IMG/VR virus record: IMGVR_UViG_3300042511_000879
Coordinates: 62,001-126,000 of that record
Length of the DNA stretch: 64,000 nucleotides
Strand: one strand, 5' to 3'
Shown here piece by piece: positions 35,809 to 55,298 of this stretch. The notes under the pieces were generated by a model. The model did no database searches, was not told where the DNA came from, and worked only from the letters and a program-made list of their open reading frames with translations. A program made the position numbers and the translations under genes. Numbering within the stretch: the stretch's first letter is position 1; the number at the start of each line of letters is the position of its first letter.

Positions 35809-35974
35809 TTCGATATTTATTTTTAAATTTATCTATGTAATCTACAGACTTTGAACTTCCTATTAATACATCTGCGTTTCTAACGTATTTTCTAAAAAAA
35901 GAAATACTTCCTTTACATTTAAGAAATTCTTTAAGAGCCTTTTTTTCAGGCACAAATATTTTATTAATACTCAT
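35774..35974 (-). CDS. Small hypothetical protein
   Basis: ORF track; sits between dCMP deaminase and the next gene. Confidence 0.45.
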   Translation of the reverse strand: MSINKIFVPEKKALKEFLKCKGSISFFRKYVRNADVLIGSSKSVDYIDKFKNKYRNESDSVFFELD

Positions 35975-36479
35975 TCCACGCTATTACTTGTTCAACTTCA
36001 ATTTCTGCTTTTTTAAGTAGTTCAACACCGCTCATATCTCTATAATCTTCAGTGTAGTATACTTTTTTGATTCCGGCTTGTATGATTAATTTTGCACAAT
36101 CAAAGCATGGACACGTTGTAGTATATAAATCGGCTCCTTCGCAACTCATTGTAGATTTTGCAACTTTCATAATTGCATTAGATTCTGCGTGTAAGACTTC
36201 TCGTTTGGTAACATGTCGATGAGCACAACATGAATTATCATTTGAAAGGGTCCATCCATTATCTTCTAAAAGTTCAGCGTTGTCAGGATTATCCCAATAA
36301 GTTGTTTCCACCATCTCGCATTCATTTTCGAACCCGTGGGGAGTACCATTGTAGCCAAATGAAATTACTTGTTTGTCTTTAACAATAACACATCCTACCT
36401 TTCTACGTTCAGCATAACTAAGTTTTGCGAACTGATATGCAACTTGCATATAAATTATCTCTGTCGGAATTTTGGGCAT
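35964..36479 (-). CDS. dCMP deaminase
   Basis: RRKVGCVIV, GYNGTP, HAESNAI and PCFDCAK zinc-binding deaminase motifs. Confidence 0.93.
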   Translation of the reverse strand: MPKIPTEIIYMQVAYQFAKLSYAERRKVGCVIVKDKQVISFGYNGTPHGFENECEMVETTYWDNPDNAELLEDNGWTLSNDNSCCAHRHVTKREVLHAESNAIMKVAKSTMSCEGADLYTTTCPCFDCAKLIIQAGIKKVYYTEDYRDMSGVELLKKAEIEVEQVIAWNEY

Positions 36480-37481: not shown

Positions 37482-37799
37482 TTATATATCTTTATTTTTT
37501 AAATAACTGAAACTGTCTGATAAAAAGTAGTCTCGGAGTTTTAGATAGTGTATCAATATAAAGAATATTGAACCTCCTGGCATTACAACTATTGTTGCTA
37601 GACCTAATGTCTTAACCAGATTTATTAATTGTTTTGCAAACTTTTTACCCTCTTCGTCAGTTAAAGGTCTACGTTCTATAACGCATGTTGTTAAAAGTTT
37701 AGACATTGATTTTGTTTCAACGCCCTCTTTTTTAAGAGCCTCTAAAAATAGGTTAACATCCTTTTTTATCTTTTCTAACTCAATTGTTTTATTTTTCAC
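37482..37799 (-). CDS. Hypothetical protein with hydrophobic C-terminal segment
   Basis: ORF track; LGLATIVVMPGGSIFFILI is reminiscent of LETM1-like/membrane helices. Confidence 0.5.
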   Translation of the reverse strand: MKNKTIELEKIKKDVNLFLEALKKEGVETKSMSKLLTTCVIERRPLTDEEGKKFAKQLINLVKTLGLATIVVMPGGSIFFILIHYLKLRDYFLSDSFSYLKNKDI

Positions 37800-38706
37800 A
37801 GAGTATAAATTCTTTTTGGTATTTTTGAAGAGCCAATTCTTTTGCTTTGGCCTCTATTTCTATATCTATTTCCATTCCATAGGTATCAATAAATTCATAT
37901 AGATAATCGGCGTGTGCTCGTATAATAACACTAGGGTCTTCGTGTAGTTTTTTGGCACTTGAATAGTGACACAATTGGCGAATACCTTTAGGCCACGTAC
38001 GAGCTGCTAAAAGAAGAGCATCTTGTTCGGACATCGGGTCTTCATAGCATCTATGGTGATGGTAGTCGAATGTGATTGGAGTACCAATTGCTTCGTAAAT
38101 TCGGTAAAGGTCATTTACAGAGTATTGTGCAGGTTTATCGTCGTTTTCGAGGATTAAACGGGACTGTGCAGAAGGTGATAACAATTTAAAGTTTTCGATG
38201 AACCTTAGGATTGCTGATTCTTTGTCACCATACGAACCTCCAACATGAATATTCATCGAATAATATGGATTTGCCGGAAGACCCATCATATCTAATATAA
38301 ATGCATGTTGATTAAGTTCTTTGATAGAATTATCGACAGTTTTTTGATTTGGACTAGGCAATACACAAAACTGACCAGGATGGAATCCAATTCGCTGACC
38401 GTATTTTTGTACAAGAGAACCCGCGCCTTTTAGTAAATTTGAAATTGTTGGCCAATTTGGCAAATCAGTAAGCTCATATTCGGACATCCATGGGAACATA
38501 CTAGACGACATACGGTACAAAGTAACGCCGTTTTTATGATTCCATTTAATGATTTCTATCATGTCGCGGATATTTGCCTCTGCAAGTTCTCCAGCGTATT
38601 TGATACCTTTTGCGTCAAAGGTTTTTTTAATCATTGAACGCCCGATTTTAATACCACTCTTGTCAAGAGTCAAATTTATGCAACAATATCCGTAGTTAGC
38701 TCCCAT
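37789..38706 (-). CDS. uvsE: UV damage endonuclease UvsE/UVDE
   Basis: GYCCIN, YRMSSSMFP, HPGQFCVL, NIHVGG, LENDDK, DYHHH, HADY and EAKAKELAL motifs. Confidence 0.92.
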   Translation of the reverse strand: MGANYGYCCINLTLDKSGIKIGRSMIKKTFDAKGIKYAGELAEANIRDMIEIIKWNHKNGVTLYRMSSSMFPWMSEYELTDLPNWPTISNLLKGAGSLVQKYGQRIGFHPGQFCVLPSPNQKTVDNSIKELNQHAFILDMMGLPANPYYSMNIHVGGSYGDKESAILRFIENFKLLSPSAQSRLILENDDKPAQYSVNDLYRIYEAIGTPITFDYHHHRCYEDPMSEQDALLLAARTWPKGIRQLCHYSSAKKLHEDPSVIIRAHADYLYEFIDTYGMEIDIEIEAKAKELALQKYQKEFILCEK

Positions 38707-39860: not shown

Positions 39861-40205
39861 TTATTTCCAGAATAGCTGGACACATATTATAATAAATGAA
39901 AGTATTAAACAAGTTATTGTCTTTGCATTTAGAGATTCATCCATCATAAAATATGTTAGGATAGAGAACGAAATCATACCCATTGCAAATCCAATAAATC
40001 TTCCTGGCCAAAGTTGACCATCGTAATATTCTGCAATCATTCTAGTTGCTTCTATAAAAACATATGATATTGTAGAACCTCCTATTACAGCAACTAGCAA
40101 TGGGTTTCTTTTAAACCACGGCCACATGAACTGACCATTTGTTTGGAACCATATAAACGATTGTCCAAATAGAAACAAAAGAATTCCATATATTAATGCT
40201 CTCAA
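39861..40205 (-). CDS. Small multi-pass membrane protein (SMR/EamA-like)
   Basis: 114 aa with about four hydrophobic helices. Confidence 0.55.
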   Translation of the reverse strand: MRALIYGILLFLFGQSFIWFQTNGQFMWPWFKRNPLLVAVIGGSTISYVFIEATRMIAEYYDGQLWPGRFIGFAMGMISFSILTYFMMDESLNAKTITCLILSFIIICVQLFWK

Positions 40206-40834
40206 AATAAGGTTCCTGTTTCGGTCAGTAGGTGAGAAATAAAACTCATTCGATGTTGCTTACTCGGACCTAATGATTTAATTGCATCAATATGTGCTTT
40301 AGTACCATATCCTTTGTTTGAATTCCAACCATATCCAGGAATCTCAATATCCAAATCTTTCATAACAGCATCTCTTTCAGTTTTAGCTAGAATACTTGCA
40401 GCCGCTATTGAAATATATTTATTGTCTCCTCCGATTATAGTTTCAAAAGGAATTCCTTCAAATCCATGGAACTGGTCTCCATCAACTAATATAAAGTCAA
40501 ATTGGGCATTTTTTTGAACTCCTTCTAAGCATCGTTGCATTCCAATTAAAGTTGCTTTTAAGATATTAGTTGATTCAATATCTTCCGGAGATATATGTAC
40601 AATGCAATATGCAATTGCATTTTCCTCAACAATTCTACGAGCCTCTTTTCGTTGTTGTTCATTTAATAATTTTGAATCTTTGATTAAGGGGTTTTCAAAG
40701 CCAAATGGCATTATGCATGCGGCAACCGTAACAGGTCCACTTAGTGAACCTCGGCCAGCCTCATCAATGCCAATTTCTATAATTGATTCATCTCCAGAAT
40801 AGGAGTGTTTAAGTAGTATTTGTCTGGTTTCCAT
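40202..40834 (-). CDS. rnhB: Ribonuclease HII
   Basis: GIDEAGRGSLSGPV, DSKLL, LVDG, IAAASILAK, NKGYGT and HRMSF motifs. Confidence 0.95.
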   Translation of the reverse strand: METRQILLKHSYSGDESIIEIGIDEAGRGSLSGPVTVAACIMPFGFENPLIKDSKLLNEQQRKEARRIVEENAIAYCIVHISPEDIESTNILKATLIGMQRCLEGVQKNAQFDFILVDGDQFHGFEGIPFETIIGGDNKYISIAAASILAKTERDAVMKDLDIEIPGYGWNSNKGYGTKAHIDAIKSLGPSKQHRMSFISHLLTETGTLF

Positions 40835-40879: not shown

Positions 40880-41632
40880 TTATTTCTCAGGGTTTTCAAC
40901 TCTCCATTTGTCGTAACGATCTACCACGTCTTGAAGTATTTTAGCTCTTACAATATCTTTATTCTCAAAAACATGGACTCCAGTTCCTTTAATTCCGCTC
41001 ATCAACTTCATAAATCCTGGAAGACCAGCACTAACCTTTGGTATATCATATTGACTAATATCACCAGTAACTAGAACCTTAGAATTTTTACCCATACGGG
41101 TTGTGAATAACATTAATTGTTTAAATGATGCATTTTGAGCCTCATCTAGAATCATAAATGAATCATCAAAGGTATCTCCTCGCATAAAGGCAAGTGGTTT
41201 AAATTCAATAGCACCTGAAGCGATCAGCCCTTCGGTTAATTCATCACCTACTATTTTTTTAAAATTTGAAATATATGATTGCATGTACGGATCAACTTTG
41301 TCTGCAATATCTCCAGGTAGGAATCCAAGTTTTTCTCCTGATTCTTGAATTGGTTTACATAGGATAATTTTTGAAACTCCTTTTGTTGCTAGCAACCATA
41401 GGGAAGTATAGCATGCAGTAAATGTTTTTGAGGTACCTGCTGGACCTGAACAGAACGTTATTTCATTTTTTTTGATTTTTTCAAAATAATCATATTGAGA
41501 TGGTTTTAATTGTACTCCTACTAAATCTAATTCTTTTACTACTGTTTTTTTAGGACGTCCAATTGGAGCTTTTGTAGTCGTAGGTTTTGCCTTAGTTGTT
41601 TTTGATTTACTTTCCACTGTTCTTTTTTGCAT
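40880..41632 (-). CDS. phoH: PhoH-like ATPase
   Basis: GPAGTSKT, LGFLPGD, PLAFMRG, ILDEAQN and GDISQYD motifs. Confidence 0.93.
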   Translation of the reverse strand: MQKRTVESKSKTTKAKPTTTKAPIGRPKKTVVKELDLVGVQLKPSQYDYFEKIKKNEITFCSGPAGTSKTFTACYTSLWLLATKGVSKIILCKPIQESGEKLGFLPGDIADKVDPYMQSYISNFKKIVGDELTEGLIASGAIEFKPLAFMRGDTFDDSFMILDEAQNASFKQLMLFTTRMGKNSKVLVTGDISQYDIPKVSAGLPGFMKLMSGIKGTGVHVFENKDIVRAKILQDVVDRYDKWRVENPEK

Positions 41633-41996: not shown

Positions 41997-42260
41997 CTAT
42001 ATTATATTGCTTGATAACATTTCAATTATCTTTTTAAGTTCTTTACATTTTTCATAATCTTCATTATCTTTAAAAAACTTAAGAACCGTTTGCACTCCTT
42101 CTATTTTCTCTTCAATAGTTCCATCGTGCTTTAAGGCACCCATTTTACCATTAACAATAGAAGAGTACATTGCCTCCATCATATCTTCTTTAGAGGCTTC
42201 GTGTAGTCTTTTTATAAATTTTCTTGATTCCTCCGGGCTTTCTTCTTCAATACTGCTCAT
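41997..42260 (-). CDS. Small protein with C-terminal UVR-like motif (2 of 4)
   Basis: FFKDNEDYEKCKELKKI; overlaps the end of dnaJ. Confidence 0.65.
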   Translation of the reverse strand: MSSIEEESPEESRKFIKRLHEASKEDMMEAMYSSIVNGKMGALKHDGTIEEKIEGVQTVLKFFKDNEDYEKCKELKKIIEMLSSNII

Positions 42261-43080
42261 TTGGATTTTTTATCTTTTTAAGTAATTCTATTTCAGTTTC
42301 AGTTAAAGTTATAGGAAGAGTTCTAAGTTTCACCATAAGATTTCCGAATCCTTCTGCGTTATATATTGGCATTCCTTGTCCAACAACTCGTAGAAGTTGT
42401 GAATCATGAGAACCTTGAGGAACTTTGATTTTAATAGAATTTAGTTTGGTGTGGATTTCAAATTCTCCTCCGAGTAGAAGGTCAATCCAGTTTAGGGTTA
42501 ATTCAACATAGATATCACTGCCATTAACAATAAGTTCAGGGTCTGGTAAAACATTGACAGTTAATATGATATCGCCAGGAGGCGCAGATGAATTTACAGG
42601 GTGATTTGCTCCTTTACCTGGGACTTTAAGTTTTGTTCCAGTTTGGATTCCTCGAGGTATATTGATATTAAATCCACCAGTACCGACATCAATATATTTT
42701 CTGACACCTTCATATGATTCCTCAACTGTTATATTTAATGTAACTCTAACATCATATCCTCTTGCTTGACCGCCAAAGGATTGATTAAACATGTCGGTAA
42801 AATCACCTCCAAAACCATGGAAAGCGTGTTGCCATGCAGATGTGGTGTCCTGGTTTCTTTGGAAATTTCCAAATGGATTATGTCCTCTAGATGGATTATC
42901 ATACTGTTCTTTTTTGACAGGGTCAGAAAGAGTTTCGTATGCTTCAGATATTTTTTTGAATTGCGAGTCGTCTCCTCCTGTTTTGTCAGGATGGTGTTCT
43001 TTTACAAGCTTTCTATAAGATTTTTTAATCTCTTCTGGAGTAGCACCCTTTGAAACGTTAAGAGTTTCGTAATAATTCAT
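42247..43080 (-). CDS. dnaJ: DnaJ-family co-chaperone lacking the zinc finger (CbpA-like)
   Basis: J domain YYETLNV...HHPDK...AYETLSD, G/F-rich linker, C-terminal substrate-binding repeats, no CxxCxGxG. Confidence 0.92.
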   Translation of the reverse strand: MNYYETLNVSKGATPEEIKKSYRKLVKEHHPDKTGGDDSQFKKISEAYETLSDPVKKEQYDNPSRGHNPFGNFQRNQDTTSAWQHAFHGFGGDFTDMFNQSFGGQARGYDVRVTLNITVEESYEGVRKYIDVGTGGFNINIPRGIQTGTKLKVPGKGANHPVNSSAPPGDIILTVNVLPDPELIVNGSDIYVELTLNWIDLLLGGEFEIHTKLNSIKIKVPQGSHDSQLLRVVGQGMPIYNAEGFGNLMVKLRTLPITLTETEIELLKKIKNPNEQY

Positions 43081-43650: not shown

Positions 43651-43719
43651 ATTTGATATGTAAATATAATACAAATTCCTGACACAGAAAAACTTTTTAT
43701 CAAAAAGTTATTAACAATT
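43651..43719 (-). promoter_or_regulatory. Class-1 promoter (N18 variant)
   Basis: TTTC(43690-43687)-N18-TATATTTA(43668-43661)CATATC; upstream AATTGTTAATAAC box at 43707-43719. Confidence 0.7.
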
Positions 43720-44450
43720 TAAAATGGTACCTCATCTACCATATCCATTCCTGATATTTTAAGCATCACATTCATAGTGGCTTTAACATCTCCTTCACAA
43801 TATGTTTTTATTCTTTCAATACTACCATTCCAATACTCTTCAGTTGTACTACTTGCTTCCATTATAGTTTTAGGAGATGGAATATTAAGAGTGTTACAAA
43901 TTAAATCTAGTGATGCACTATTCCAACCTGCAAATTTCCAAATTTCATAAGTATCTACTAGACAGTTTTCCCAAGGTTTTTTCTTTTGTAAATGAAATTG
44001 ATGAGGTATTGCTACTCCGTTTACAATGGATCTTTTTATTAGATATGGAAAATCAAAGTTTTTAATATTATGTCCAGTAAATTGAACTGAAGGACTTTGA
44101 TTAAAAACAGCTTGAGCTGTACCCATAAACTCTTTAAGAATTTCTATTTCGCTACCTTTATAGAAAGAACGAATTTTTGAGGTTGTAATACCATCTTGGA
44201 ATTTAATTTGTCCCATAGAAATTACAATAACTTTGCTAAATTCTGGACTAAGCGCCGACATATGAGTATACATTTCCGCATCAGTAAGTTTTGCCAAATG
44301 AGATTCAGTATTTCTATGCTGTTCTGCTTTTTTTGCCCAATGCTTTATTCCGCCTGGTCTTTTAATACAGAATTCTTCGTAATTCGGATATTCTGAAGAT
44401 GTTTCAATGTCAATAAATAACATTGACTTTAGTTCGGTAGTATTATACAT
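43719..44450 (-). CDS. 3'-5' exonuclease, PolB-exonuclease-like (DEDD)
   Basis: LFIDIET, GHNIKNFDFPYL, KPWE...VDTYEIW and YCEGDV motifs; family common in Bacteroidota. Confidence 0.88.
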   Translation of the reverse strand: MYNTTELKSMLFIDIETSSEYPNYEEFCIKRPGGIKHWAKKAEQHRNTESHLAKLTDAEMYTHMSALSPEFSKVIVISMGQIKFQDGITTSKIRSFYKGSEIEILKEFMGTAQAVFNQSPSVQFTGHNIKNFDFPYLIKRSIVNGVAIPHQFHLQKKKPWENCLVDTYEIWKFAGWNSASLDLICNTLNIPSPKTIMEASSTTEEYWNGSIERIKTYCEGDVKATMNVMLKISGMDMVDEVPF

Positions 44451-44722: not shown

Positions 44723-44941
44723 TTAAAGATGTGTAGTGTCAACGTGGTCATGTGACTGTCGAAGTATCATATATCGATCATATGATATACTCATTTCGAT
44801 CCATCCTCCAGTAATAGATTTGGGTACTTCGTGATGGTCAATTATATAGTTTGGTGGGGTAGTAACTCTTTCTAATAAAAAGTCCATCATCAAATCTGAT
44901 TCTCTATTATGAACCCATATTTTTACAAATGTATTATTCAT
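44723..44941 (-). CDS. Hypothetical protein
   Basis: ORF track; overlaps the glycosyltransferase stop. Confidence 0.55.
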   Translation of the reverse strand: MNNTFVKIWVHNRESDLMMDFLLERVTTPPNYIIDHHEVPKSITGGWIEMSISYDRYMILRQSHDHVDTTHL

Positions 44942-46784
44942 GTTCGTTATATATTATATTTGCCGCCATCTCTTCTTGATTAAATCTTGACACTGTATTT
45001 AACGGTGCACCTGGATTTTCGTCATACGCCCAATCTTTTAATCCTAACTCTTCAAACCTGTTTTTGATTTGCTCGTTATAATAATAACCTATTGTACGTA
45101 CTCGTCTTTGAATATCTGCTCTTGATAGATTATGAGTATTCTGTCCATTTGCATTATTATATAAGAATTGAATATACCCTAATTTTGGTATTTTGCAAGT
45201 TATTGCTTTTAAGAAAGTTCTTACAACCAACTCATAATCATCGGCTATTACAAGACTTCTATTATGTCCTCCTATTTCAAAATAAGTAGATCGTCTCCAT
45301 GCTCTTACGTGATTTGGTACACCAACTATATGTCTAATTGTTTTAGGATTAATATTCTGTTGATTAGAAACATTTAGTGTCTTTCCAGCATACTCTTCTT
45401 TTCTATATGATCCGTATCCAAGCGCAAATCCTTCGCTATATGTTAAAGAATTCCAGTTTTCATCAACTTCAACAGTGTCATTAAAAAAGAATCCGGCTTC
45501 TGGATGTTTTTTAGCTGCTTTATAAAGGTCTTCAGTACACCATGGAACTAATAAATCGTCATGGTCTAATTCAGCTAAAATAAAACCTTTAGCCATTGAG
45601 CAACATCTCCATTTAACCTCACCAATATTTCCACCGCTTTTTTCTCTAAAATCATAAAGGCGTACTCTTGGGTCTTTTGCTGCAATAGATTCTGCTATTT
45701 TTAATGTTTTACCACCATCAGTAGAGTCATTTACTAGTACCCATTCCCAATTGTTGTATGTTTGGTCTAGCAGCGATTGATATGTATTAAATAGTTTTTC
45801 ACCAGTATTATATATTGGGGTAAAATATGATATCATTGAACTATCTTCTAATCCATCTGGGTTCAACAGACTTTCCATTAAACACTGATACGCGATTTGT
45901 CCAGCATCTCTAGTGGAAACTTCTTTGTCAAGATTTAACCATTTTCGTCTAAATTGAAGTGGCATGCTTGCCATTTCTGGAAAGTTTTCCCAAGATTCTC
46001 CTCTAGTTATAATAACGTCTGGTTTAAATGAGGCTAGGGATATTGTGATGTCTTTGTCATTTTTTAAATACTTAATCTCCAAACTATCATCTTCATAGTC
46101 AAGTATTTTAAGTGATTTTAATTCAGGCTCATCATGCCCAATATACAATACTTTAGGAACTTTTGCAGTTGATTTTTTCTGTAAGTAATTGTAGTGTGAT
46201 AGTACTCTTCCCGTAAATGTAAACCATTCAGGATGTTCGGCATGAACGGAACTTATAAAGATTCCATCAGCTTGATAATCAGGCAAATATGAATATTCAT
46301 ATTCATTATAAACATCAATACTAACAATATATTGAGCTAAATCAACTCCCTGCACTTTCATAAATTTAGGATATGCTTTTCTATATGTTAAGTTTGTAAA
46401 ATCTCTTCCGGCAACATGTTGTGAAACTACATGGATTTTTTTGTCTGGATTCTTTAAAGAAGATTGCAAAACATATTCATAGAAACCTTCATGCATGATA
46501 TTATCATCATCTAAAAAATAAACCCAACCATCTGATAATTTTGAAATTATGGCAGAACATTGAGGATATAACATTCCTATAGCATCTCCTTTTTCAAAAT
46601 GGTATGTTGTTAGATCGTCTTTTAAATCACATAGTAATTCTGCATCAATATCTTTAAGATTTGTAGTGTCAAATACTATGTGCCAATTTATTTCGCATCC
46701 ATTTGGTATATTGTTAAAGACAGATTCTTTAACAGTCTTTAAATTCTGTAGGCGCGTTGCTCGAGTTATTATACTAATTTTCAT
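44934..46784 (-). CDS. Tandem GT-A (GT2-like) glycosyltransferase, two catalytic domains
   Basis: Domain 1: ISIITRATR...WVYFLDDDN. Domain 2: ISYFTPIYN...WEWVLVNDSTDG...AELDHDD...ADDYEL. Confidence 0.88.
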   Translation of the reverse strand: MKISIITRATRLQNLKTVKESVFNNIPNGCEINWHIVFDTTNLKDIDAELLCDLKDDLTTYHFEKGDAIGMLYPQCSAIISKLSDGWVYFLDDDNIMHEGFYEYVLQSSLKNPDKKIHVVSQHVAGRDFTNLTYRKAYPKFMKVQGVDLAQYIVSIDVYNEYEYSYLPDYQADGIFISSVHAEHPEWFTFTGRVLSHYNYLQKKSTAKVPKVLYIGHDEPELKSLKILDYEDDSLEIKYLKNDKDITISLASFKPDVIITRGESWENFPEMASMPLQFRRKWLNLDKEVSTRDAGQIAYQCLMESLLNPDGLEDSSMISYFTPIYNTGEKLFNTYQSLLDQTYNNWEWVLVNDSTDGGKTLKIAESIAAKDPRVRLYDFREKSGGNIGEVKWRCCSMAKGFILAELDHDDLLVPWCTEDLYKAAKKHPEAGFFFNDTVEVDENWNSLTYSEGFALGYGSYRKEEYAGKTLNVSNQQNINPKTIRHIVGVPNHVRAWRRSTYFEIGGHNRSLVIADDYELVVRTFLKAITCKIPKLGYIQFLYNNANGQNTHNLSRADIQRRVRTIGYYYNEQIKNRFEELGLKDWAYDENPGAPLNTVSRFNQEEMAANIIYNEHE

Positions 46785-48103: not shown

Positions 48104-48790
48104 TTATTTTCTAGATTTTGATTTAACTGGATTAATAATCTCGTCGATTATACCGTACTTAAGTGCCTCTTCTGCGCTTAACCATAAATCTCGGGTAGCA
48201 TCAGACATAACCTGCTCTGGTTTCTTGTCACAATATGAACCTAACAAATTAAATAGTTCTTTGTTGACTTTTTGCCATTCTGCCCAGTCTATTTCGGCAT
48301 CTTGGATATTCCCACTGAATCCTCCTGAGGATTGGTGTAACATAGTAGTCGAGTGTCTTAGTGAACTTCTCTTGCCTTTAGTTCCAGCTCCTAATAGTAC
48401 TGAACCCATCGAAGCTGCCATTCCTGTATTTACTGTTTTGATATCAGATTTAATCCATTCCATAACGTCAATCATAGAAAGCCCTGATTTTACAGAACCT
48501 CCTGGACTATCAATATGCATTGTTATATCTCGGTCATCTGTGCTATCTAAAAACATTAATTGAGCTTGTACAATAGTTGACATATTGTCATTAACAGGCC
48601 CTGCAACCCACAATAATCGATCGATCATCAACCTTGAAAATATATCCATTTGAGTAGCTCTTAATTGTCTCTCTTCTAGAATATAAGGTGTCATTGATGA
48701 TTCAATTTGATTTTTATAGTAGTGCATGTTCATTGAACTTATGCCCTTGTCTAGCATTGCGTATCTTTCGAATTCTTTTCCGTGATTCAT
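48104..48790 (-). CDS. clpP: ATP-dependent Clp protease proteolytic subunit
   Basis: TPYILEER, DIFSRL, IDSPGGSV, GMAASMGSVLL (catalytic Ser) and MLHQ (catalytic His); Bacteroidota-type N-terminal extension. Confidence 0.96.
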   Translation of the reverse strand: MNHGKEFERYAMLDKGISSMNMHYYKNQIESSMTPYILEERQLRATQMDIFSRLMIDRLLWVAGPVNDNMSTIVQAQLMFLDSTDDRDITMHIDSPGGSVKSGLSMIDVMEWIKSDIKTVNTGMAASMGSVLLGAGTKGKRSSLRHSTTMLHQSSGGFSGNIQDAEIDWAEWQKVNKELFNLLGSYCDKKPEQVMSDATRDLWLSAEEALKYGIIDEIINPVKSKSRK

Positions 48791-49092
48791 TATAGTTTCT
48801 TTAATAGTTTTTTAATTTGAGTACATCTTTCGTATTTTTCATGGAATGTATAGAAGTCCAGGCTTTTTAATATTGATTGCTTATAAGAACTTTTAGGAAG
48901 ATCTGCATACTGTATATCTCCATTTTCATGGACAAAATAACATAATAATGTTTCTCTATCTTCTTTGTTAATATTTGCTTCGATAAAATCTACAATTCTG
49001 TCGTGAAATTCGCAATCGTTTGTAATTGAATTAAACCCATCTCCATCTATGTAGAATTCAGGGATATCTGTTCCTTTCATGCACTCAATCAT
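48790..49092 (-). CDS. Small protein with C-terminal UVR-like motif (4 of 4)
   Basis: FYTFHEKYERCTQIKKLL; its stop overlaps the clpP start at 48790. Confidence 0.65.
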   Translation of the reverse strand: MIECMKGTDIPEFYIDGDGFNSITNDCEFHDRIVDFIEANINKEDRETLLCYFVHENGDIQYADLPKSSYKQSILKSLDFYTFHEKYERCTQIKKLLKKL

Positions 49093-49943
49093 ATCTCTTT
49101 TATATTAAGATACCCTGATAATAAATTATAATATGTTTCTTTGGTCAACACATTATCTATCGTGGTATTTATATTATTTATCATCGAAATTCCTGAAGGG
49201 GTTAAACTCATAACTCCATTTTCAATATTAAAAATAGGTTCTAATAATTCCATTAAGTATTGTTTCTCGTGAAGAGGCTCGTGAACGATCCTTTCGGCTA
49301 ATTCAAAATGTCTTTCGTAAAAGTGGATGTTATCAGCGTAATGATGGTATACTCCAAGTTCTAATTCTGGGTAAGTTGACTTTAACCAAAGGTAAACATG
49401 TTGTTGGACGAATGCAAAGAATGGAGCATCAAATGTAAGTCCATAAAAAATATCATTAGATCGCATTTGAACTTTCATATCTAGCTTATTGTGTCTGATT
49501 GAAAAGTTTAGGTACATAGTACATACAAAATCTTTATTACCTTCAAACTGGTATTTTGGCTGATTTAAGAAAGCAATTGCTTGTCTAGTGTTCTTGTCTG
49601 CTTTAAGAGAATCGACTACCCATTGTAATTGTTCTCCGAAAAGAAGAGAACCGTAATTTGAATTAATTTCGTTTGTTCCAGGATTTGTTATGTTTTTCCA
49701 GAATCCAGAAAATTTATTAATGTAGTCAATATTGGTATCTTTATTAAGGTACCATGCTAATTCGCCGGCAAAATACTTCCAATTAAACTCTCTACTATTA
49801 AAATTAGCAAATGGTTCTTTTGGATTAATTGGATATCCGGCATAAAGTAATTCGGTAACTTCAAGGTCTCTTGGTTTAGAGACCTCTCCGTGTATTTTTA
49901 TATCTGAAATTATGTGTTTAAATTGGTGTGAGAATGTTTTCAT
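49089..49943 (-). CDS. Thymidylate-synthase-family enzyme, dCMP hydroxymethylase (T4 gp42)-like
   Basis: EINSNYG, DFVCT (catalytic Cys), MRSNDIFYGLTFD (Asp at the pyrimidine-specificity position) and HFYERHF, paralleling gp42 EINSNYG/DFMCT/RSNDVVFGFRND/YSRHF. Confidence 0.8.
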   Translation of the reverse strand: MKTFSHQFKHIISDIKIHGEVSKPRDLEVTELLYAGYPINPKEPFANFNSREFNWKYFAGELAWYLNKDTNIDYINKFSGFWKNITNPGTNEINSNYGSLLFGEQLQWVVDSLKADKNTRQAIAFLNQPKYQFEGNKDFVCTMYLNFSIRHNKLDMKVQMRSNDIFYGLTFDAPFFAFVQQHVYLWLKSTYPELELGVYHHYADNIHFYERHFELAERIVHEPLHEKQYLMELLEPIFNIENGVMSLTPSGISMINNINTTIDNVLTKETYYNLLSGYLNIKEI

Positions 49944-49956
49944 GTTTATAATTTTA

Positions 49957-50880
49957 TTATATTACGTCAAAAAAGAACATGTGAAAGAATCTTGCGTTCT
50001 CAATAGCATCGCCAAAATATTTACTTGGCGCATGAATTTGTTTAGAATCGAATAGAACTAAACGGTTGTATACATTACCAACCTCATCGATTTTATCAAA
50101 ATTAGTTGAATCATAAAAATTTGCTTGAGCATTCTTGCCTTTAAATGTATCTTCAAACACAGAATAGTCTTCAAAATTATCAAATCTTTTTTTACCAGTA
50201 TTTTTACCAGAATAGAAAGATGTACCTGTTTCGAATGGAGCATCTTTAGTTAAGAATACCATTCCTGCATACATCTGACTGTCAACATGAAATACGGGTA
50301 GATCGCTTGCTACACAATATTGGAATACTCCATTTGCATAACTTTCATAATTCCAGTTTATAATTTCGCGGCCAATTATCTTTTCTAATTTCTCTTTAGT
50401 GCCATCTAGAATAAACCTAGTTTGACTTCTTTTACCTTTGTGATAATCAGAGGGGTTGTATTCTAGATTATTCATTGCAAAATCTCTAATAAAGTCAGGA
50501 TCTGCATAAAAATTATCAACTACAATTAGACTTTTATTTTCATTATAGAATCCAGAATAATAAGCAATAAAATTATCAATGCTTCCTGGATTATAAATAA
50601 GTTCTCCAAATTTAACTTGAATCTTTGCGCCTTTAGAGATATTAAAAACTAATCCAACACTATCATCTTCTAAAGGATAATATTTAGAAACATCTGGACG
50701 ACTAATAACTGTTAATGGTATTTCAATATCATCGACTATCAATGAACTAACTGGTTTAAAGGAATCACCGTCTTTTACTAGAATCCAACCAGTTGCATTA
50801 TAGTTATTATCGGATACTTTGGTAATTGAATCAAAAAACCAAAAAACGTTTGGATCTTTTGTAAAAGTGTTATAAATCAT
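49957..50880 (-). CDS. 2OG-Fe(II) oxygenase-like protein with an extra N-terminal beta domain
   Basis: LIVVDNFYADPD start of the catalytic domain, HVD...H (QIHAP)...R iron/2OG motif, NRLVLFDS. Confidence 0.75.
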   Translation of the reverse strand: MIYNTFTKDPNVFWFFDSITKVSDNNYNATGWILVKDGDSFKPVSSLIVDDIEIPLTVISRPDVSKYYPLEDDSVGLVFNISKGAKIQVKFGELIYNPGSIDNFIAYYSGFYNENKSLIVVDNFYADPDFIRDFAMNNLEYNPSDYHKGKRSQTRFILDGTKEKLEKIIGREIINWNYESYANGVFQYCVASDLPVFHVDSQMYAGMVFLTKDAPFETGTSFYSGKNTGKKRFDNFEDYSVFEDTFKGKNAQANFYDSTNFDKIDEVGNVYNRLVLFDSKQIHAPSKYFGDAIENARFFHMFFFDVI

Positions 50881-50906: not shown

Positions 50907-52880
50907 TTATTTAAAAGAAAGTTTCTCATCTCCTTTTTTATATGAAATCGTGTACGTTTTATTTCCTTTAACAATTTCTTTAGCTAAAATACCATCTGCT
51001 AATAAGTCTTCAACATACGTTTGAATTGCTCTTTTAAGAGGTCTAGCTCCATATTGAGCATCATACCCACGTTCTGCTAAAAATACTATCGCCGTTTTTG
51101 CAACTTTAATAATATATTCTTGTTCAACCATTCTTTCAATTACTTTTTGAATTTCGATTTCTGCAATTTTAGCAACATCTTCTTGTTTTAATCCATCAAA
51201 CAATACTATTTCATCCAATCTATTTAAGAATTCCGGAGCAAATTTGTTTTTAAGCTCTTTTCTGATAACAGTTTCCATTTCCATTTTGTGGGTGGCCGTA
51301 GAACTTGAACTTGAGAATCCGATTCCAGCCCCAAATTCTGCAACTCTTTTTGCTCCAACATTACTTGTCATAATAATGATAGTATTCGTAAAGTCAATAG
51401 TTCTACCAAGAGTATCTGTTAAACGACCCTCATCTAAAACCTGTAACAAGATATTGAAAATATCTGGGTGGGCCTTTTCAACTTCATCAAATAATACTAC
51501 TGAATATGGTTTACGTCGGACTTGTTCTGTTAACTGTCCACCATCCTCATGTCCTTCATATCCCGGAGGAGAACCAATAAGTCTACTTACGTTAAACTTT
51601 TCTTGGTATTCTGACATGTCGATTCTGATTAAAGAATCCTCGCTTCCGAAATAATATTCAGAAAGGGCTTTAACAGTTTCAGTTTTACCAACTCCAGTAG
51701 GTCCAATAAACATAAATGAACCGATAGGTTTTTTAGATGAACTTACTCCAGTTCGGCTTCTTTTAATAACTCTACATAGACCTTCAACCGCAGTATCTTG
51801 CCCGATAATCATCGCTTTTAATTCATTTTCCATATCAATAACAATTCTGCTCTCGTCATCGGTCATTCTTGTTACCGGAATTCCAGTAGATTCAGAAATT
51901 ACTTCAGCAATATCTTCATAAGTTACTGCCTTCTTATTTAGTCTAAGCGTCTCCTCCCATTCTTTGGTTCTTTTTGTTATCTCTTCTCGCTTACTAATTT
52001 CAAGGTCTCTTAAATTTCCGGCTTTTTCATAATTAGTAGCATCTGCTGCTTTTAACTTTGCGGCTTTTAATTTATCAGCTTCAATTTCAAGTTCTTTAAT
52101 AATTTCTGGAATTTTTACCTCTTTTAAATGTACTTTTGCTCCAGCCTCGTCCATAACATCAATTGCTTTGTCCGGTAATTCTCTTTGAGTAATATATCGG
52201 TCAGATAATACTACACAGGCTTTAATAGCGTCAGGAGTATATGATACTGAATGGAAGTCTTCGTAATTTGGTTTAATTCTGTCTAGAATTTCGATTGCAT
52301 CTTCAAGGGATGGTGGGTCTATAAAGATTTCTTGGAATCTTCTGGTAAGAGCTCCATCGGTTTCAATATTTTCACGATACTCATCGATTGTCGTAGCACC
52401 AATACATTGTACTTGTCCTCTTGCCAATGCCGGTTTTAAGATATTACTAGCATCTAATGAACCACTTACACCACCAGCGCCTACAATTGTGTGAATCTCA
52501 TCAATAAAGACAATAACATCTGGGTTCTCTTTAAGTTCATCAACAATGTTTTTCATTCGTTCCTCAAATTCTCCACGGTATTTTGTACCTGCAACTACGT
52601 TTGCAATATTAAGAGCAATTATACGTTTATTAAGAAGAGTCATTGCAACTTTCTTTTCAACAATACGTTGCGCAATTGCTTCAACTAGTGCAGTTTTACC
52701 AACCCCAGGATCCCCTAAAATAATTGGATTGTTTTTCTTTCTACGAGAAAGGATTTGACATATTCTATGGACCTCTTTTTCTCTTCCGATGATAGGGTCA
52801 AGTTTCCCATCTGCCGCTAGTTTAGTTAAGTCCTCTCCGAATTGGTCAATGAATGGAGTATTTGTTTTCTTACTGGTCAT
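50907..52880 (-). CDS. clpC: ClpC-type Hsp100 ATPase lacking the Clp N-terminal repeat domain
   Basis: Two AAA+ modules (GDPGVGKT and GPTGVGKT), UVR middle domain (NYEKAGNLRD), IGF loop (GAGIGFS); sequence begins directly at the D1 pre-helix. Confidence 0.92.
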   Translation of the reverse strand: MTSKKTNTPFIDQFGEDLTKLAADGKLDPIIGREKEVHRICQILSRRKKNNPIILGDPGVGKTALVEAIAQRIVEKKVAMTLLNKRIIALNIANVVAGTKYRGEFEERMKNIVDELKENPDVIVFIDEIHTIVGAGGVSGSLDASNILKPALARGQVQCIGATTIDEYRENIETDGALTRRFQEIFIDPPSLEDAIEILDRIKPNYEDFHSVSYTPDAIKACVVLSDRYITQRELPDKAIDVMDEAGAKVHLKEVKIPEIIKELEIEADKLKAAKLKAADATNYEKAGNLRDLEISKREEITKRTKEWEETLRLNKKAVTYEDIAEVISESTGIPVTRMTDDESRIVIDMENELKAMIIGQDTAVEGLCRVIKRSRTGVSSSKKPIGSFMFIGPTGVGKTETVKALSEYYFGSEDSLIRIDMSEYQEKFNVSRLIGSPPGYEGHEDGGQLTEQVRRKPYSVVLFDEVEKAHPDIFNILLQVLDEGRLTDTLGRTIDFTNTIIIMTSNVGAKRVAEFGAGIGFSSSSSTATHKMEMETVIRKELKNKFAPEFLNRLDEIVLFDGLKQEDVAKIAEIEIQKVIERMVEQEYIIKVAKTAIVFLAERGYDAQYGARPLKRAIQTYVEDLLADGILAKEIVKGNKTYTISYKKGDEKLSFK

Positions 52881-52931: not shown

Positions 52932-53144
52932 TTATGAATGGGTACCTTTTAAATTGTTAACCGAACGTTGAACACATTCAGGACATAGAGATGCAGTGGC
53001 TTCGGCTCCTACAACAGTCCAGTTCTCGCATGGTCCATCTTCAGGCCCATATTCTGCCCATTTACTCTTTTCCGGTTCTGAATTCTGACAAATCATCGAT
53101 ACGACCTTACGGCCTTTAACTTCAGTTTCTTTAGTTTTCCACAT
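52932..53144 (-). CDS. Small putative zinc-binding protein
   Basis: C...C...CPEC pattern; class-2 promoter at 53162-53188. Confidence 0.6.
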   Translation of the reverse strand: MWKTKETEVKGRKVVSMICQNSEPEKSKWAEYGPEDGPCENWTVVGAEATASLCPECVQRSVNNLKGTHS

Positions 53145-53189
53145 AGTATATTTATTTTAGATTTATATTGAGTTATTCCAATTTGTTTC

Positions 53190-54590
53190 AGGGTAAACTT
53201 AAAGAACCTTTGAGTTAAGTGAAAAATTTTTATTCTGTAATTCAGACCGGGTGCACCCTCCTATTGCGTGGGAAAATTTGGGTTTCAATCATCAAAAAAA
53301 TGAAATAATCTACCAGAACGATTGAACCGTTGAGGCCGTTTGAAATACATAAAGTCACATTGAGGGACTATTGGGCGGCCCTCCCCTAGCCCTATTAATA
53401 CCTATTGGCACATCGGTCGTCACAGTATACTGAGCACTCTATTGGAGGTATCAGAATGGGTGTGTCCTTCCTGTAGATACTCTATATAATAACGGATGTA
53501 CACTATAGGGGTTTTTAAATATCGTATACTATTAGATAGAATAGTTCTCTTTTTAATTAGAATCCCTACAGCACGCCCCCACCCCGCCCCTTTGGGACTC
53601 TATGGGATAGAGGTCAATTTTATTTTTTTCTATAGGATTTTTTTGAGAGCTTAGAGACTTGGAGTACCTCAGAGAGGTGAGAGAGCGGTGAGTCACCCTA
53701 CCTTTCACCTTTGAGACTTGGATACTTCTTATATCCTCATAGGACCTATTAGTTTCAACGGGTTACTCTTTATTTCACAGTACACTTCGTGCCTGACACA
53801 GTACCCTCAGGTCAATCTGAGCCAACCATCGGTAATTGGTAACGGTCTTATTGGTTAATTATAGGTTCTTTATGTTTCTAGTAACGGTGATATCCATTCT
53901 ATCGGTCTCAATTGGTCTTTGGTCACCTTCCGGACCTGGGTAATTTTTTGGGTAGGGCAACATTGAAGTACTCTGAGGGTGGGATGGACCATTGGCTACC
54001 ATCGGAGGACCATCAGAGGACCATTGACGCTGGGAGGGTCTCTCAACATTGAGGTATTGATATTCCCGGACGGGGATAATTCGTCCACTTCTATGAAACA
54101 CATTTATCAAAGGTCTATATTAGTTAGGAAGTCTAGAGCTTTGATCCTACAGTCCTTTGAGAACCTCTAGACCTGGCTTTTATAAGGATCCACCCTGGGT
54201 GCTGACCGCTCCGTAGACCTGCCCAACCGGTATTGAGGGTCAATGCACACGTGCCCTAGAGTCCAGTGGTGACTGGAAGAGTCCTGCTCTACCCTAGTTA
54301 CCCTGTGTCTGTAGTGAACTATTAGTATTATTGTCATTCTTGTGCAGAGCACACCTGCATTGTGCAGGCATTGACCTGCATTGCCTATTGCAACAGTTGA
54401 TCAGTGCACTACAGGTAGATAGGTCTATTGCCCTTACAACAATATTGAGCCTATTGAGCATATTGAACCTTTGAGGACATTGAGTAATCATTGAATTGCA
54501 TTGATTATTGCTACAGGGCATTGAGCCGGGCATTGCTACAGGACATTGATCCTGGACATTGCGCCGGGCATTGATCTGGGGACATTGATC
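53190..54590. other. Non-coding, GC-richer, repeat- and hairpin-rich island (left)
   Basis: About 1.4 kb without a credible gene in an otherwise fully packed genome; many (C/T)ATTG and GGACCAT motifs, hairpins and C runs. Confidence 0.7.
54350..54590 (+). repeat. Degenerate short-period (C/T)ATTG array
   Basis: About 19 ATTG copies between 54359 and 54587, mostly spaced 9-14 nt; the later copies read GG(A/G)CATTG. Confidence 0.85.
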
Positions 54591-54593
54591 CTC

Positions 54594-55298
54594 CTATTTG
54601 AATCTGGGAGTATTGATCCTGGGAGAGTTGAAACGGAGATTAGGCGCGGAGATACTCTTCTGTTTATAAGCTGGGCCTAGGTCCCTTTCTGGTGCCTTAT
54701 AAGGGGACATTGTATTTGTCTTGTCAAAACTTGTTATAGGGAATGGGGCTGGTTCCGATACCTTATTATTAGATGGGTCATATTGTTTTTGGCTAGTACG
54801 TTTTATAGGTGCACTATCTGGTTGTTTATTAACATTTGCGTTAGGGTCTCCATTATCGTGCCCGAAGTCACTATCTATAGAACCTCTATCTCCACCTGTA
54901 TTGTTTGCTATCATATTACCCATTTGTGCATCTATAAGAGATTCTTTAAACCCCTTAGAACGAGGTTGAGGTGTTTGAGCTATATCGGTTTCCTTAGTTG
55001 GTGTTTGGGCCTGATCGCTTGACGATAGTGTTTGTTTATCGTATTGGACATTTTGATTGGCTGGATTATTTTGCTTTCGGGCAGTATCTGAGGTTGCCTT
55101 ATTACCCTGTTGGGTTTGAGCATTAACATCACTTCCAGCCTTATTTATACCCGTTGCATCTATAGGAGATATTGAACTGTCTCCTGGGGATGGATTTAAA
55201 CTACTAGGAACTGATGAGGTATCTGTCTTATTAGAGGTTTGAGTCTTAGCAGCATTTACCCTATCGCTTATACTAATTTGAGTTAGACCTATCTTCAT
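54594..55298 (-). CDS. Low-complexity, probably disordered S/T/Q/P/D-rich protein
   Basis: 705-nt open frame with few hydrophobic residues. Confidence 0.6.
   Translation of the reverse strand: MKIGLTQISISDRVNAAKTQTSNKTDTSSVPSSLNPSPGDSSISPIDATGINKAGSDVNAQTQQGNKATSDTARKQNNPANQNVQYDKQTLSSSDQAQTPTKETDIAQTPQPRSKGFKESLIDAQMGNMIANNTGGDRGSIDSDFGHDNGDPNANVNKQPDSAPIKRTSQKQYDPSNNKVSEPAPFPITSFDKTNTMSPYKAPERDLGPAYKQKSISAPNLRFNSPRINTPRFK

Follow-up and report, generated by a model that had tools for sequence, protein, structure and literature searches.

A 234-kb lake-water phage (IMG/VR record IMGVR_UViG_3300042511_000879) encodes, between genes for a ClpB-like ATPase and a ClpP-like protease, a protein of the thymidylate synthase (TS) family that appears to carry an aspartate where dUMP-specific enzymes have asparagine. 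The question raised by this locus is whether the protein makes thymidylate, as its database labels suggest, or a modified deoxycytidylate and, if the latter, which other phage genes act in the same pathway. The region analysed here, referred to as the window, is a 64,000-nucleotide stretch comprising positions 62,001 to 126,000 of the record; coordinates refer to the window unless stated to be those of the genome. A preliminary description of the locus, made from the sequence alone, proposed that the enzyme is a cytosine-specific homologue similar to T4 gp42, that the genome contains modified cytosine, that an adjacent 2OG-Fe(II) oxygenase and a nearby double glycosyltransferase (GT) could extend this to an undescribed modification in a Bacteroidota phage, and that automated pipelines would probably label the gene thyA. 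The analysis below shows that the underlying observation is real, whereas the interpretation placed upon it is only partly supported. All of the evidence is computational.

A TS homologue with the gp42 signature

The open reading frame at 49089-49943, on the minus strand, encodes a 284-residue protein that contains EINSNYG, DFVCT, RSNDIFYGLTFD and YERHF, the four motifs on which the initial assignment was based. The protein matches Pfam PF00303 at 68.9 bits against a cut-off of 24.3, and phrog_160 with an E value of 5e-40. Its best matches among solved structures are T4 dCMP hydroxymethylase (1b49; E 6e-15, phmmer, over residues 42-217) and the CMP hydroxymethylase MilA (E 2e-14), while true ThyAs score only 1e-7 to 1e-5. 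Megablast of the region against cultured phages returned no match. The prediction that pipelines would name the gene thyA is borne out, as JGI and NCBI label close homologues ‘thymidylate synthase'. The NCBIfam ThyA equivalog models, however, score the protein at 47 bits against cut-offs of 108-427 (47.5 bits against a cut-off of 327 for the best model).

In a MAFFT alignment with Escherichia coli ThyA, the final Asp of RSNDIFYGLTFD falls in the Asn177 column, the position that determines substrate specificity (T4 Asp179). The Cys in DFVCT aligns with the catalytic nucleophile Cys146 (T4 Cys148), the Asp in the same motif occupies position 143, three residues before the Cys (T4 Asp145, E. coli Leu143), and RSND places an Asp in column 169, showing that the folate-site aspartate (T4 Asp171) is retained. 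The alignment is validated by RB69 gp48, which displays the published E143/N169/D177 pattern. The columns D143, C146, D169, D177, E58 and Y94 are identical to gp42, but at positions 143/169/177 the protein differs from ThyA (L/D/N), the RB69 5-hydroxy-dCMP synthase (E/N/D), the XP12 methylase (N/D/D) and the dUMP hydroxymethylases (D/D/N), according to rules described in PMC13326640. The EINSNYG motif, which contains the Ser-x-Tyr pair (T4 Ser94/Tyr96), is identical in the two proteins in the phmmer alignment. The acidic residue three positions before the Cys, which activates the substrate water, and the Ser-x-Tyr pair constitute the hydroxymethylation signature defined in PMC6400193, in which the D145N mutation abolishes activity. 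The pattern is not a chance feature, as 140 of the 142 nearest 50%-identity family representatives share D143/C146/D169/D177. Consistent with these data, phylogenetic analysis, one of the checks suggested at the outset, places the protein with gp42, Xp15/HHU4 and RsoM2USA in a 53-row clade displaying the D143/C146/D169/D177 pattern (D-C-D-D), with an SH-aLRT support of 93, although this was a quick maximum-likelihood tree in which gp42 is on a long branch.

These data bear directly on the alternative activities of the superfamily. It is very unlikely that the protein is a flavin-dependent 5-hydroxy-dCMP synthase of the RB69 gp48 type, which has Asn at position 169, a dUMP hydroxymethylase (SPO1 gp29, ViI, phiW-14), or an ordinary ThyA, as both of the latter have Asn177. 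Indeed, all four dUMP-type references have this Asn and form a separate clade. Shared superfamily membership and the database labels speak for these assignments, and the presence of a separate canonical ThyA in the genome speaks against them. A dCMP methyltransferase of the XP12 type, which would lead to 5-methylcytosine in the DNA, is also very unlikely, although XP12's enzyme likewise has Asp177 and keeps D169, such that 5-methyl-dCMP is excluded only by position 143 (Asp as in all hydroxymethylases, but Asn in XP12 in this alignment) and by the tree, where XP12 branches outside the clade that holds the target.

Companion enzymes and the predicted route to 5-hydroxymethylcytosine

The genome contains a set of enzymes that matches that of T4. 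A separate, canonical ThyA (genome 154487-155761) scores 283.8 bits and contains RSVDTFLGLPFN. A dCMP deaminase similar to T4 cd is encoded at 35964-36479 on the minus strand (PF00383, 84 bits), and the same family sits beside gp42-type TS genes in Xp15, phage G and many of the cassette loci described below. Pfam models for dUTPase, PRA-PH and MazG did not identify a dCTPase in the genome, but a phmmer search with T4 gp56 revealed a gp56-like protein (genome 29454-29921; 59 bits). A ribonucleotide reductase (RNR) and a family-B DNA polymerase are also present. In contrast, no dNMP kinase similar to T4 gp1 was found; searches of the genome with T4 gp1 and the MA9V-2 thymidylate kinase gave no hit, PF02223 scored 13 bits, below its cut-off, and the only small P-loop candidate is an AAA_33 protein of 135 residues. 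The step from 5hm-dCMP to the diphosphate is therefore unexplained.

The protein is most likely a folate-dependent dCMP hydroxymethylase, and modified cytosine, most likely 5-hydroxymethylcytosine (5hmC), is the best reading of the DNA; this view is held with reasonable confidence. By analogy with gp42, the Cys in DFVCT would attack C6 of dCMP, the Asp at the Asn177 position would read and protonate the cytosine ring, and methylene-tetrahydrofolate would donate one carbon. The Asp three residues before the Cys, together with the Ser-x-Tyr pair, would position water such that the exocyclic methylene is hydrated rather than reduced, giving 5-hydroxymethyl-dCMP. In this model the dCTPase drains dCTP to dCMP, the deaminase and the canonical ThyA supply dTMP, and the polymerase incorporates 5hm-dCTP, leading to virion DNA in which 5hmC replaces most or all of the cytosine. 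While the family membership, the diagnostic residues, the tree and the gene content are shown by the analysis, the catalytic activity, each of these metabolic steps and the composition of the DNA are inferred from sequence.

The annotation of this enzyme has broader consequences. As it is routinely labelled thyA, thousands of metagenomic phages that probably carry 5hmC-type DNA are being missed, whereas the D143/S-x-Y/D169/D177 signature cleanly separates these proteins from ThyA, 5-hydroxy-dCMP synthases and dUMP hydroxymethylases.

The adjacent oxygenase and the double glycosyltransferase

The gene for the TS homologue is part of a conserved backbone in the order ClpB-like, TS-like, a protein of ∼100 residues and ClpP. 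The upstream neighbour (50907-52880, minus strand) is a ClpB/ClpC-like double AAA+ ATPase (PF07724, 242 bits), and the ClpP-like protease (48104-48790, minus strand) matches PF00574 at 189 bits. Located within this backbone, at 49957-50880 on the minus strand, is the 2OG/Fe(II)-oxygenase-like protein, which belongs to DUF6445 (PF20043, 46.5 bits) and retains H198-x-D200 and a distal His. The double GT (44934-46784, minus strand), referred to as GT616, is a 616-residue two-domain GT-A (GT2) protein with a PF00535 match (63 bits) spanning residues 321-447 and a DDD motif in the N-terminal half. A further processing of 5hmC by these two proteins, in parallel with TET/JBP plus GT-A systems, is suggested by the location of the three genes within 6 kb on one strand, the intact HxD...H triad of the oxygenase, and the best PDB match of GT616, TarP (6h1j), which is the PDB homologue reported for phage GT-A DNA glycosyltransferases.

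Comparative data, however, do not support this proposal, which is now considered improbable. DUF6445 is absent from this site in all four relatives examined, at 92, 78, 73 and 65% identity, in which the backbone is conserved, and GT616 is replaced by other genes in relatives at 78% identity or below. A TS homologue is located near DUF6445 or GT616 homologues only in the window's own clade. No Tet_JBP domain was detected, PF20043 being the only match, PDB sequence searches with DUF6445 gave no hits, and an Atlas search for similar proteins returned only other DUF6445 members. Conversely, 59 of 60 DUF6445 loci carry the GT, mostly 0-20 bp away. In 52 of 57 loci outside the window's own clade a gene encoding collagen repeats lies within 10 kb, usually 67-157 bp upstream of DUF6445, compared with 0 of 79 control loci. 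The window encodes two such collagen-like proteins, at 546-1934 and 1963-4275 (both minus strand), with 12 and 13 consecutive G-X-Y triplets, respectively, and the genome encodes seven. No tRNAs were found in the window, and there was no Rfam match at 52.8-60.5 kb.

These data suggest that DUF6445 and GT616 most likely comprise a separate system that acts on protein, in which collagen-like virion proteins are hydroxylated and glycosylated; the collagen gene, oxygenase and double-GT operon suggests post-translational hydroxylation and glycosylation of collagen-like fibres by phages. The encoding of a 2OG/Fe(II) oxygenase and a GT-A enzyme directly behind collagen-repeat genes resembles collagen hydroxylase/glycosyltransferase systems, such as animal lysyl hydroxylase with Hyl-glycosyltransferases and mimivirus L230. 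It should be noted, however, that DUF6445 is not a recognised prolyl or lysyl hydroxylase family and has no known activity, and in this window the pair is split by the TS-ClpP block. The assignment of the virus to the Bacteroidota phages was also not supported, the host being unresolved.

A conserved cassette containing an inositol-3-phosphate synthase

Although the partners first proposed were not supported, the idea of an undescribed hypermodification may still be right, through genes located outside the window. About 80 kb from the TS-like gene, beside the dCTPase and polymerase (genome 29.9-34.6 kb), is a cassette encoding an SGNH-like protein, an inositol-3-phosphate synthase (MIPS), a HAD phosphatase, an FkbM methyltransferase and a 396-residue protein (genome 29964-31154) related to aGPT-Pplase/amino-acid:DNA transferases. 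The last of these matches PF18723 (Pplase clade 1) at a modest 33 bits against a cut-off of 25. Foldseek against the PDB gave nothing significant for its AF2 model (pLDDT 89.6), but VIA alignment placed it closest to the PaMx11 5-PmdU glycinyltransferase (gp46, 8z2m; Z 9.5), ahead of HhH glycosylases, and a search of BFVD matched the Pplase1 proteins SP10 gp186, phiRSL1 and phiW-14 gp72 (Foldseek probability 1.0). A Z score of 9.5 is below the level at which helical folds are safe, and clade-1 Pplase proteins have no demonstrated activity even in thymidine-modifying phages. The MIPS-like protein scores 262 bits to Mtb Ino1. The SGNH assignment rests on motifs, a weak Pfam hit (E 0.07) and an Atlas lead, and PDB sequence searches with this family gave no hits.

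The cassette is conserved. In 79 viral loci, the transferase-like gene is accompanied within 10 kb by the SGNH-like gene in 74, MIPS in 75 and the HAD gene in 73. In 25 of these 79 loci, from several phage lineages, a D-C-D-D TS gene is located within 10 kb, whereas none has a dUMP-type TS. In some loci the cassette directly abuts the gp42-type gene in one block, in two different gene orders, and one such lineage uses a Pol III-alpha replicase. The SGNH-like and transferase-like halves are fused (ORF233c) in the cultured Aeromonas phages 44RR2.8t and 31, which have a D-C-D-D gp42 homologue but no glucosyltransferase (PMC2993671). Petrov et al. 2010 asked what T4 relatives with gene 42 but no glucosyltransferases do with their 5hmC, a question since answered for RB69 but not for 44RR2.8t and 31, so the hypothesis developed below is open to direct test in cultured phages.

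A tentative further step in the pathway is therefore the post-replicative decoration of 5hmC. In this view MIPS and the HAD phosphatase would make myo-inositol, which the FkbM enzyme may methylate, and the SGNH-like and transferase-like proteins would attach it to the hydroxymethyl group, with the SGNH-like protein possibly being the activating enzyme in place of the kinase used in thymidine pathways. No kinase or other proven activating enzyme was found in or beside the cassette; Walker-A open reading frames next to it were considered as 5-HMUDK-like kinases but are AAA+/clamp-loader proteins. The distance of about 80 kb between the cassette and the TS-like gene in this genome also counts against this step. 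In its broadest form, which is possible but less likely than not, the hypothesis is that 5hmC in this phage, in many lake and marine phages of several lineages, and in 44RR2.8t and 31 is decorated with a phage-supplied cyclitol, either myo-inositol or a methylated or sulfated derivative. This would be the first cyclitol-DNA modification and the first cytosine counterpart of the thymidine hypermodification pathways, with an activation step that is not a kinase. A cyclitol ether on 5hmC would be isobaric with glucosyl-5hmC but chemically distinct and not a glycoside, which matters for restriction and anti-restriction biology, for defence systems that target glucosyl-5hmC, and as a source of new DNA-modifying enzymes. 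Literature searches found no paper linking inositol or inositol-phosphate synthase to phage DNA modification, and, against the hypothesis, the MetaGPA supplements do not list the cassette's domains; PF01658, PF18723, PF05050 and PF20043 are all absent from them.

It is also possible, although less likely, that the DNA carries plain 5hmC, or 5hmC modified by something not yet identified, and that the cassette makes a small-molecule nucleoside or cyclitol product, or salvages a base. TS-like hydroxymethylases feed small-molecule pathways in bacteria, as with MilA (PMC5175136), some cassette loci contain a nucleoside 2-deoxyribosyltransferase-like gene, and the second-best structural match of the transferase-like protein is the queuine-salvage nucleotide hydrolase DUF2419 (Z 9.1). 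The absence of an identified activating kinase is also consistent with this view. Against this, in several lineages the cassette is embedded among dCTPase, DNA polymerase, RNR, dCMP deaminase and gp42-type genes, its closest structural and Pfam relatives act on DNA-borne hydroxymethyl-pyrimidines, and it occurred only in viral contigs in the searches made.

Relation to characterized pathways

The TS homologue shares with T4 gp42 (1b49, 6a9a) its fold and the equivalents of Glu60, Ser94-x-Tyr96, Asp145, Cys148, Asp171 and Asp179, but is distant in sequence and has 75 residues after the Tyr209 equivalent, where gp42 has 28. The genome has no detectable homologue of T4 beta-glucosyltransferase (alpha-gt was not included in the search) or of the Molly ‘beta glucosyl transferase'. 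The Xp15 and HHU4 enzymes are among the closest cultured homologues (35% identity), displaying the same signature, in the same clade, and with a dCMP deaminase beside them. In the Xp15/MetaGPA pathway 5hmC is converted to 5-carbamoyloxymethyl-C by a carbamoyltransferase, no homologue of which was found in this genome, where the candidate tailoring genes are different.

The thymidine hypermodification pathways of M6, ViI, phiW-14, SP10 and PaMx11 comprise a dUMP hydroxymethylase, the 5-HMUDK kinase and an aGPT-Pplase/amino-acid:DNA transferase. The 396-residue cassette protein resembles the last of these and, as in ViI, sits next to an NTP pyrophosphatase. It lacks, however, a P-loop 5-HMUDK partner and, where a TS homologue is nearby, this is of the cytosine type (D177), the regular partners being the SGNH-like protein, MIPS and the HAD phosphatase. 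In the RB69/DLP3 5-hydroxycytosine arabinosylation systems a TS homologue with Asp177 and an acidic residue at position 143 likewise feeds a sugar-type DNA hypermodification, and the cluster makes its own donor. Those enzymes, however, have Asn169 and use flavin and O2, and their transferases are GT-B glycosyltransferases that use NDP-arabinose.

Identity of the thymidylate synthase homologue

The ORF at window positions 49089..49943 on the minus strand encodes a 284-aa protein that contains EINSNYG, DFVCT, RSNDIFYGLTFD and YERHF, and the observation made in the preliminary description therefore holds. The protein matches Pfam Thymidylat_synt at 68.9 bits and PHROG 160. Against solved structures its best matches are T4 deoxycytidylate hydroxymethylase (1b49, E 6e-15) and the CMP hydroxymethylase MilA (E 2e-14), whereas true thymidylate synthases score only 1e-7 to 1e-5. 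NCBIfam ThyA equivalogs reach 47 bits against cut-offs of 108-427. Close homologues in public databases are nevertheless named ‘thymidylate synthase’, as had been predicted.

Two papers give explicit rules for reading these residues. In E. coli ThyA numbering, Asn177 to Asp switches dUMP to dCMP, Leu143 to Asp/Glu goes with a non-methyl product, and Asp169 to Asn marks the flavin-dependent 5-hydroxy-dCMP synthases (Lee et al. 2026, PMC13326640). The T4 dCH ternary-complex study (PMC6400193) defines the hydroxymethylation signature as an Asp three residues before the catalytic Cys plus a Ser-x-Tyr pair, and shows that D145N abolishes activity. Reference enzymes taken from annotated records were aligned with the target. 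At positions 143, 169 and 177, respectively, the ThyAs (E. coli, RB69 td and the phage's own ThyA) display L, D and N, the dUMP hydroxymethylases of SPO1, ViI and phiW-14 display D, D and N, and the XP12 dCMP methylase displays N, D and D. RB69 gp48 displays E, N and D, as published, which validates the alignment. T4 gp42 and the target both display D, D and D. The target also has C146, E58 and Y94, and its EINSNYG motif is identical to that of T4. A search of 1.84 billion representatives gave 5483 hits, and 140 of the 142 nearest full-length ones carry D-C-D-D (the residues at 143, 146, 169 and 177).

In a maximum-likelihood tree the ThyAs are the outgroup, XP12 branches first and the dUMP enzymes form their own clade. 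The target lies in a 53-row D-C-D-D clade (SH-aLRT 93) with T4 gp42, Xp15/HHU4, RsoM2USA and MA9V-2, although this was a quick search and gp42 sits on a long branch. These data indicate that the enzyme is likely a dCMP hydroxymethylase, an activity inferred from sequence alone. Within this clade the cultured jumbo phage Chryseobacterium phage MA9V-2 (locus L019:5291-7227) has a 447-aa D-C-D-D homologue directly after a thymidylate-kinase gene, plus a separate canonical ThyA, and is another cultured candidate for 5hmC-type DNA. By contrast, the Flavobacteriia phage Maribacter phage Molly_5 (L034:1207-5966) has a homologue with the dUMP-hydroxymethylase signature (D143/N177) that lies directly after a ‘beta glucosyl transferase’, a UDP-glucose dehydrogenase and an epimerase, which looks like a glycosylated-5hmU cluster.

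Genome context and the nucleotide-metabolism kit

The IMG/VR record, of which the window is bases 62001-126000, is 236,071 bp long. Its first 2.1 kb matches its last 2.9 kb (1-2097 versus 233192-236071) at only 92-95% identity, so the assembly wraps around with strain variation. Two other assemblies of the same phage are 234,467 and 234,066 bp. The genome is therefore essentially complete at about 234 kb, CheckV's 77% completeness is probably an underestimate, and absences carry weight. The phage occurs, as contigs, in 16 DNA runs from 15 studies, nearly all lake or other freshwater metagenomes and one industrial-waste metagenome. Its nearest relatives by polymerase are uncultured huge phages, PAU and Lak phages. 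The preliminary assignment to a Bacteroidota phage is not supported, the host being unresolved.

The genome holds a second, canonical ThyA (283.8 bits, RSVDTFLGLPFN), a dCMP deaminase inside the window at 35964-36479, a deoxy-5'-nucleotidase, RNR and a split family-B polymerase. It also holds a T4 gp56-like dCTPase at genome 29454-29921, which the Pfam models missed but which phmmer found at 59 bits, in agreement with a PHROG match. No gp1-like dNMP kinase or thymidylate kinase was found in the genome, where the only small P-loop candidate is an AAA_33 protein, and this is the one gap in a T4-style pathway. A relative whose TS-like protein is 73% identical carries, a few genes upstream of the TS-like gene (L035:2972-4246), serine hydroxymethyltransferase, the enzyme that regenerates the methylene-THF donor.

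The adjacent oxygenase and glycosyltransferase

The preliminary description proposed that the genome carries modified cytosine, and that the adjacent 2OG-Fe(II) oxygenase (DUF6445, window 49957-50880) and the nearby double GT (GT616, 616 aa, window 44934-46784) could contribute to an undescribed modification. This interpretation is only partly supported, as the evidence favours the enzyme class and modified cytosine but not these partners. In relatives whose TS-like protein is 92, 78, 73 and 65% identical, the backbone ClpB-like > TS-like > ~100 aa > ClpP > ... > ~233 aa is kept. The DUF6445 gene, however, is absent between ClpB and the TS-like gene in all four, while the GT is kept only at 92% and is replaced by other genes in the rest.

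To explore the linkage of the two genes, 70 loci with GT616 homologues and 63 with DUF6445 homologues (60 of them scanned as the DUF6445 set) were collected from viral contigs. The two genes are a tight pair. Thus, 59 of 60 DUF6445 loci have the GT, mostly 0-20 bp away, and the genes are 3.15 kb apart only in the window's clade, which is also the only clade in which a TS homologue is near them. Outside that clade 52 of 57 DUF6445 loci have a collagen-repeat ORF within 10 kb, which in 41 of those ends 67-157 bp upstream of the oxygenase, compared with 0 of 79 control loci. The genome described here has seven collagen-repeat proteins, two of them in the window. The conserved unit is therefore a phage operon of collagen-repeat protein(s) > DUF6445 2OG/Fe(II) oxygenase > double GT-A (loci L214-L270, for example L234:4273-10912), which suggests enzymatic hydroxylation and glycosylation of collagen-like fibre proteins rather than DNA. 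As DUF6445 has an HxD...H triad, and the GT resembles TarP, as do known phage GT-A DNA glycosyltransferases, a role in DNA modification is not impossible, but nothing supports it and it is considered very unlikely.

A candidate cassette for hypermodification

A different candidate for hypermodification lies outside the window, upstream of its first base (genome 29454-34627), next to the gp56-like dCTPase and the split PolB. Here a 396-aa protein matches PF18723 (33 bits, cut-off 25), a family that hits phiW-14 gp72 and ViI gp160, the ‘aGPT-Pplase clade 1’ proteins of Lee et al. An AlphaFold model of the protein (pLDDT 89.6) found nothing by Foldseek against the PDB. VIA-align, however, ranked the PaMx11 5-phosphomethyl-dU glycinyltransferase 8z2m first of 48,161 chains (Z 9.5), followed by DUF2419 and about twenty HhH glycosylases, and Foldseek against viral models gave prob 1.0 to SP10 gp186, phiRSL1 and other Pplase1 proteins.

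Beside this transferase-like gene are four others, encoding an FkbM methyltransferase, a 132-aa protein that starts with the HAD motif DFDGV (a predicted HAD phosphatase), a genuine inositol-3-phosphate synthase (MIPS; 262 bits to Mtb Ino1), and a 353-aa protein with invariant GDSH and GNID blocks, which is SGNH-like. PHROG 17781 shows that the 353-aa and 396-aa proteins are one fused protein in other phages. The fused form is ORF233c of Aeromonas phages 44RR2.8t and 31, cultured T4-like phages in which it sits next to a sodium:solute symporter instead of an inositol synthase (ORF234c and ORF233c of 44RR2.8t, L045:3295-7275). This may reflect an import route rather than a synthesis route for the same kind of substrate.

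Linkage of the cassette to the gp42-type enzyme

Across 79 viral loci, with 100% down to 25% identity, the SGNH-like gene is within 10 kb of the transferase-like gene in 74, MIPS in 75, the HAD-like gene in 73 and the FkbM methyltransferase in 58. In 27 loci there is also a TS homologue. Of the 30 such ORFs 25 are D-C-D-D, three are canonical ThyAs that sit alongside a D-C-D-D copy and two are truncated; none is of the dUMP type. In several lineages the genes form one co-directional block, in two different orders. One is TS > dCMP deaminase > MIPS > HAD > transferase-like > SGNH-like (for example locus L106), while the other is TS > SGNH-like > MIPS > HAD > FkbM > transferase-like (for example L112). 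One such lineage uses a Pol III-alpha replicase and adds sulfotransferase-family genes and a further methyltransferase, and a complete 360-kb genome adds a GT4 glycosyltransferase. A C5 cytosine DNA-methylase-like gene follows the cassette in several lineages whose cytosine is presumably already replaced (L098:13136-14347, L053:12243-13421).

Phage 44RR2.8t has a D-C-D-D gp42 homologue. Petrov et al. 2010 note that 44RR, 31 and 25 have genes 42 and 56 but no glucosyltransferases, and that it is unknown whether they modify Hm-dCMP in another way. Literature searches found no paper that connects inositol with phage DNA modification, and the MetaGPA supplements do not list these domains.

The enzyme class, the accompanying nucleotide-metabolism kit, the conservation of the cassette, its association with cytosine-type and not dUMP-type TS homologues, and the fusion of its two core proteins are shown by computation. 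By contrast, the replacement of C by 5hmC in the DNA, the action of the cassette on DNA and the derivation of the appended group from inositol are inferred, as is the catalytic activity of the enzyme itself. That the DNA carries a 5hmC-derived base is considered probable, while a cyclitol-type hypermodification made by the cassette is a tentative proposal, more likely wrong than right on present evidence. No kinase that might activate the hydroxymethyl group is present in or beside the cassette; it is possible that the SGNH-like protein, so assigned from sequence, esterifies it, but this is speculation. A small-molecule role for the cassette remains a real rival.

Other features of the window

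The phage encodes its own ClpB/ClpC-like ATPase, ClpP and DnaJ (window 50907-52880, 48104-48790 and 42247-43080, respectively). The order ClpB-like > TS-like > small ORF > ClpP is conserved down to 65% identity, placing a nucleotide enzyme inside a chaperone/protease block. A DNA repair and processing set, comprising a UvdE UV endonuclease, RNase HII, PhoH and a PolB-type 3'-5' exonuclease as a separate gene, is present at window 37789-38706, 40202-40834, 40880-41632 and 43719-44450. A 1.4-kb stretch (window 53144-54594) with higher G+C (0.385-0.40 against about 0.32) has no ORF over 90 aa, no tRNA and no Rfam match. It is followed by a 234-aa low-complexity protein rich in Ser, Thr, Asn, Gln and Pro (window 54594-55298), and gene orientation switches to the + strand near 56.4 kb.
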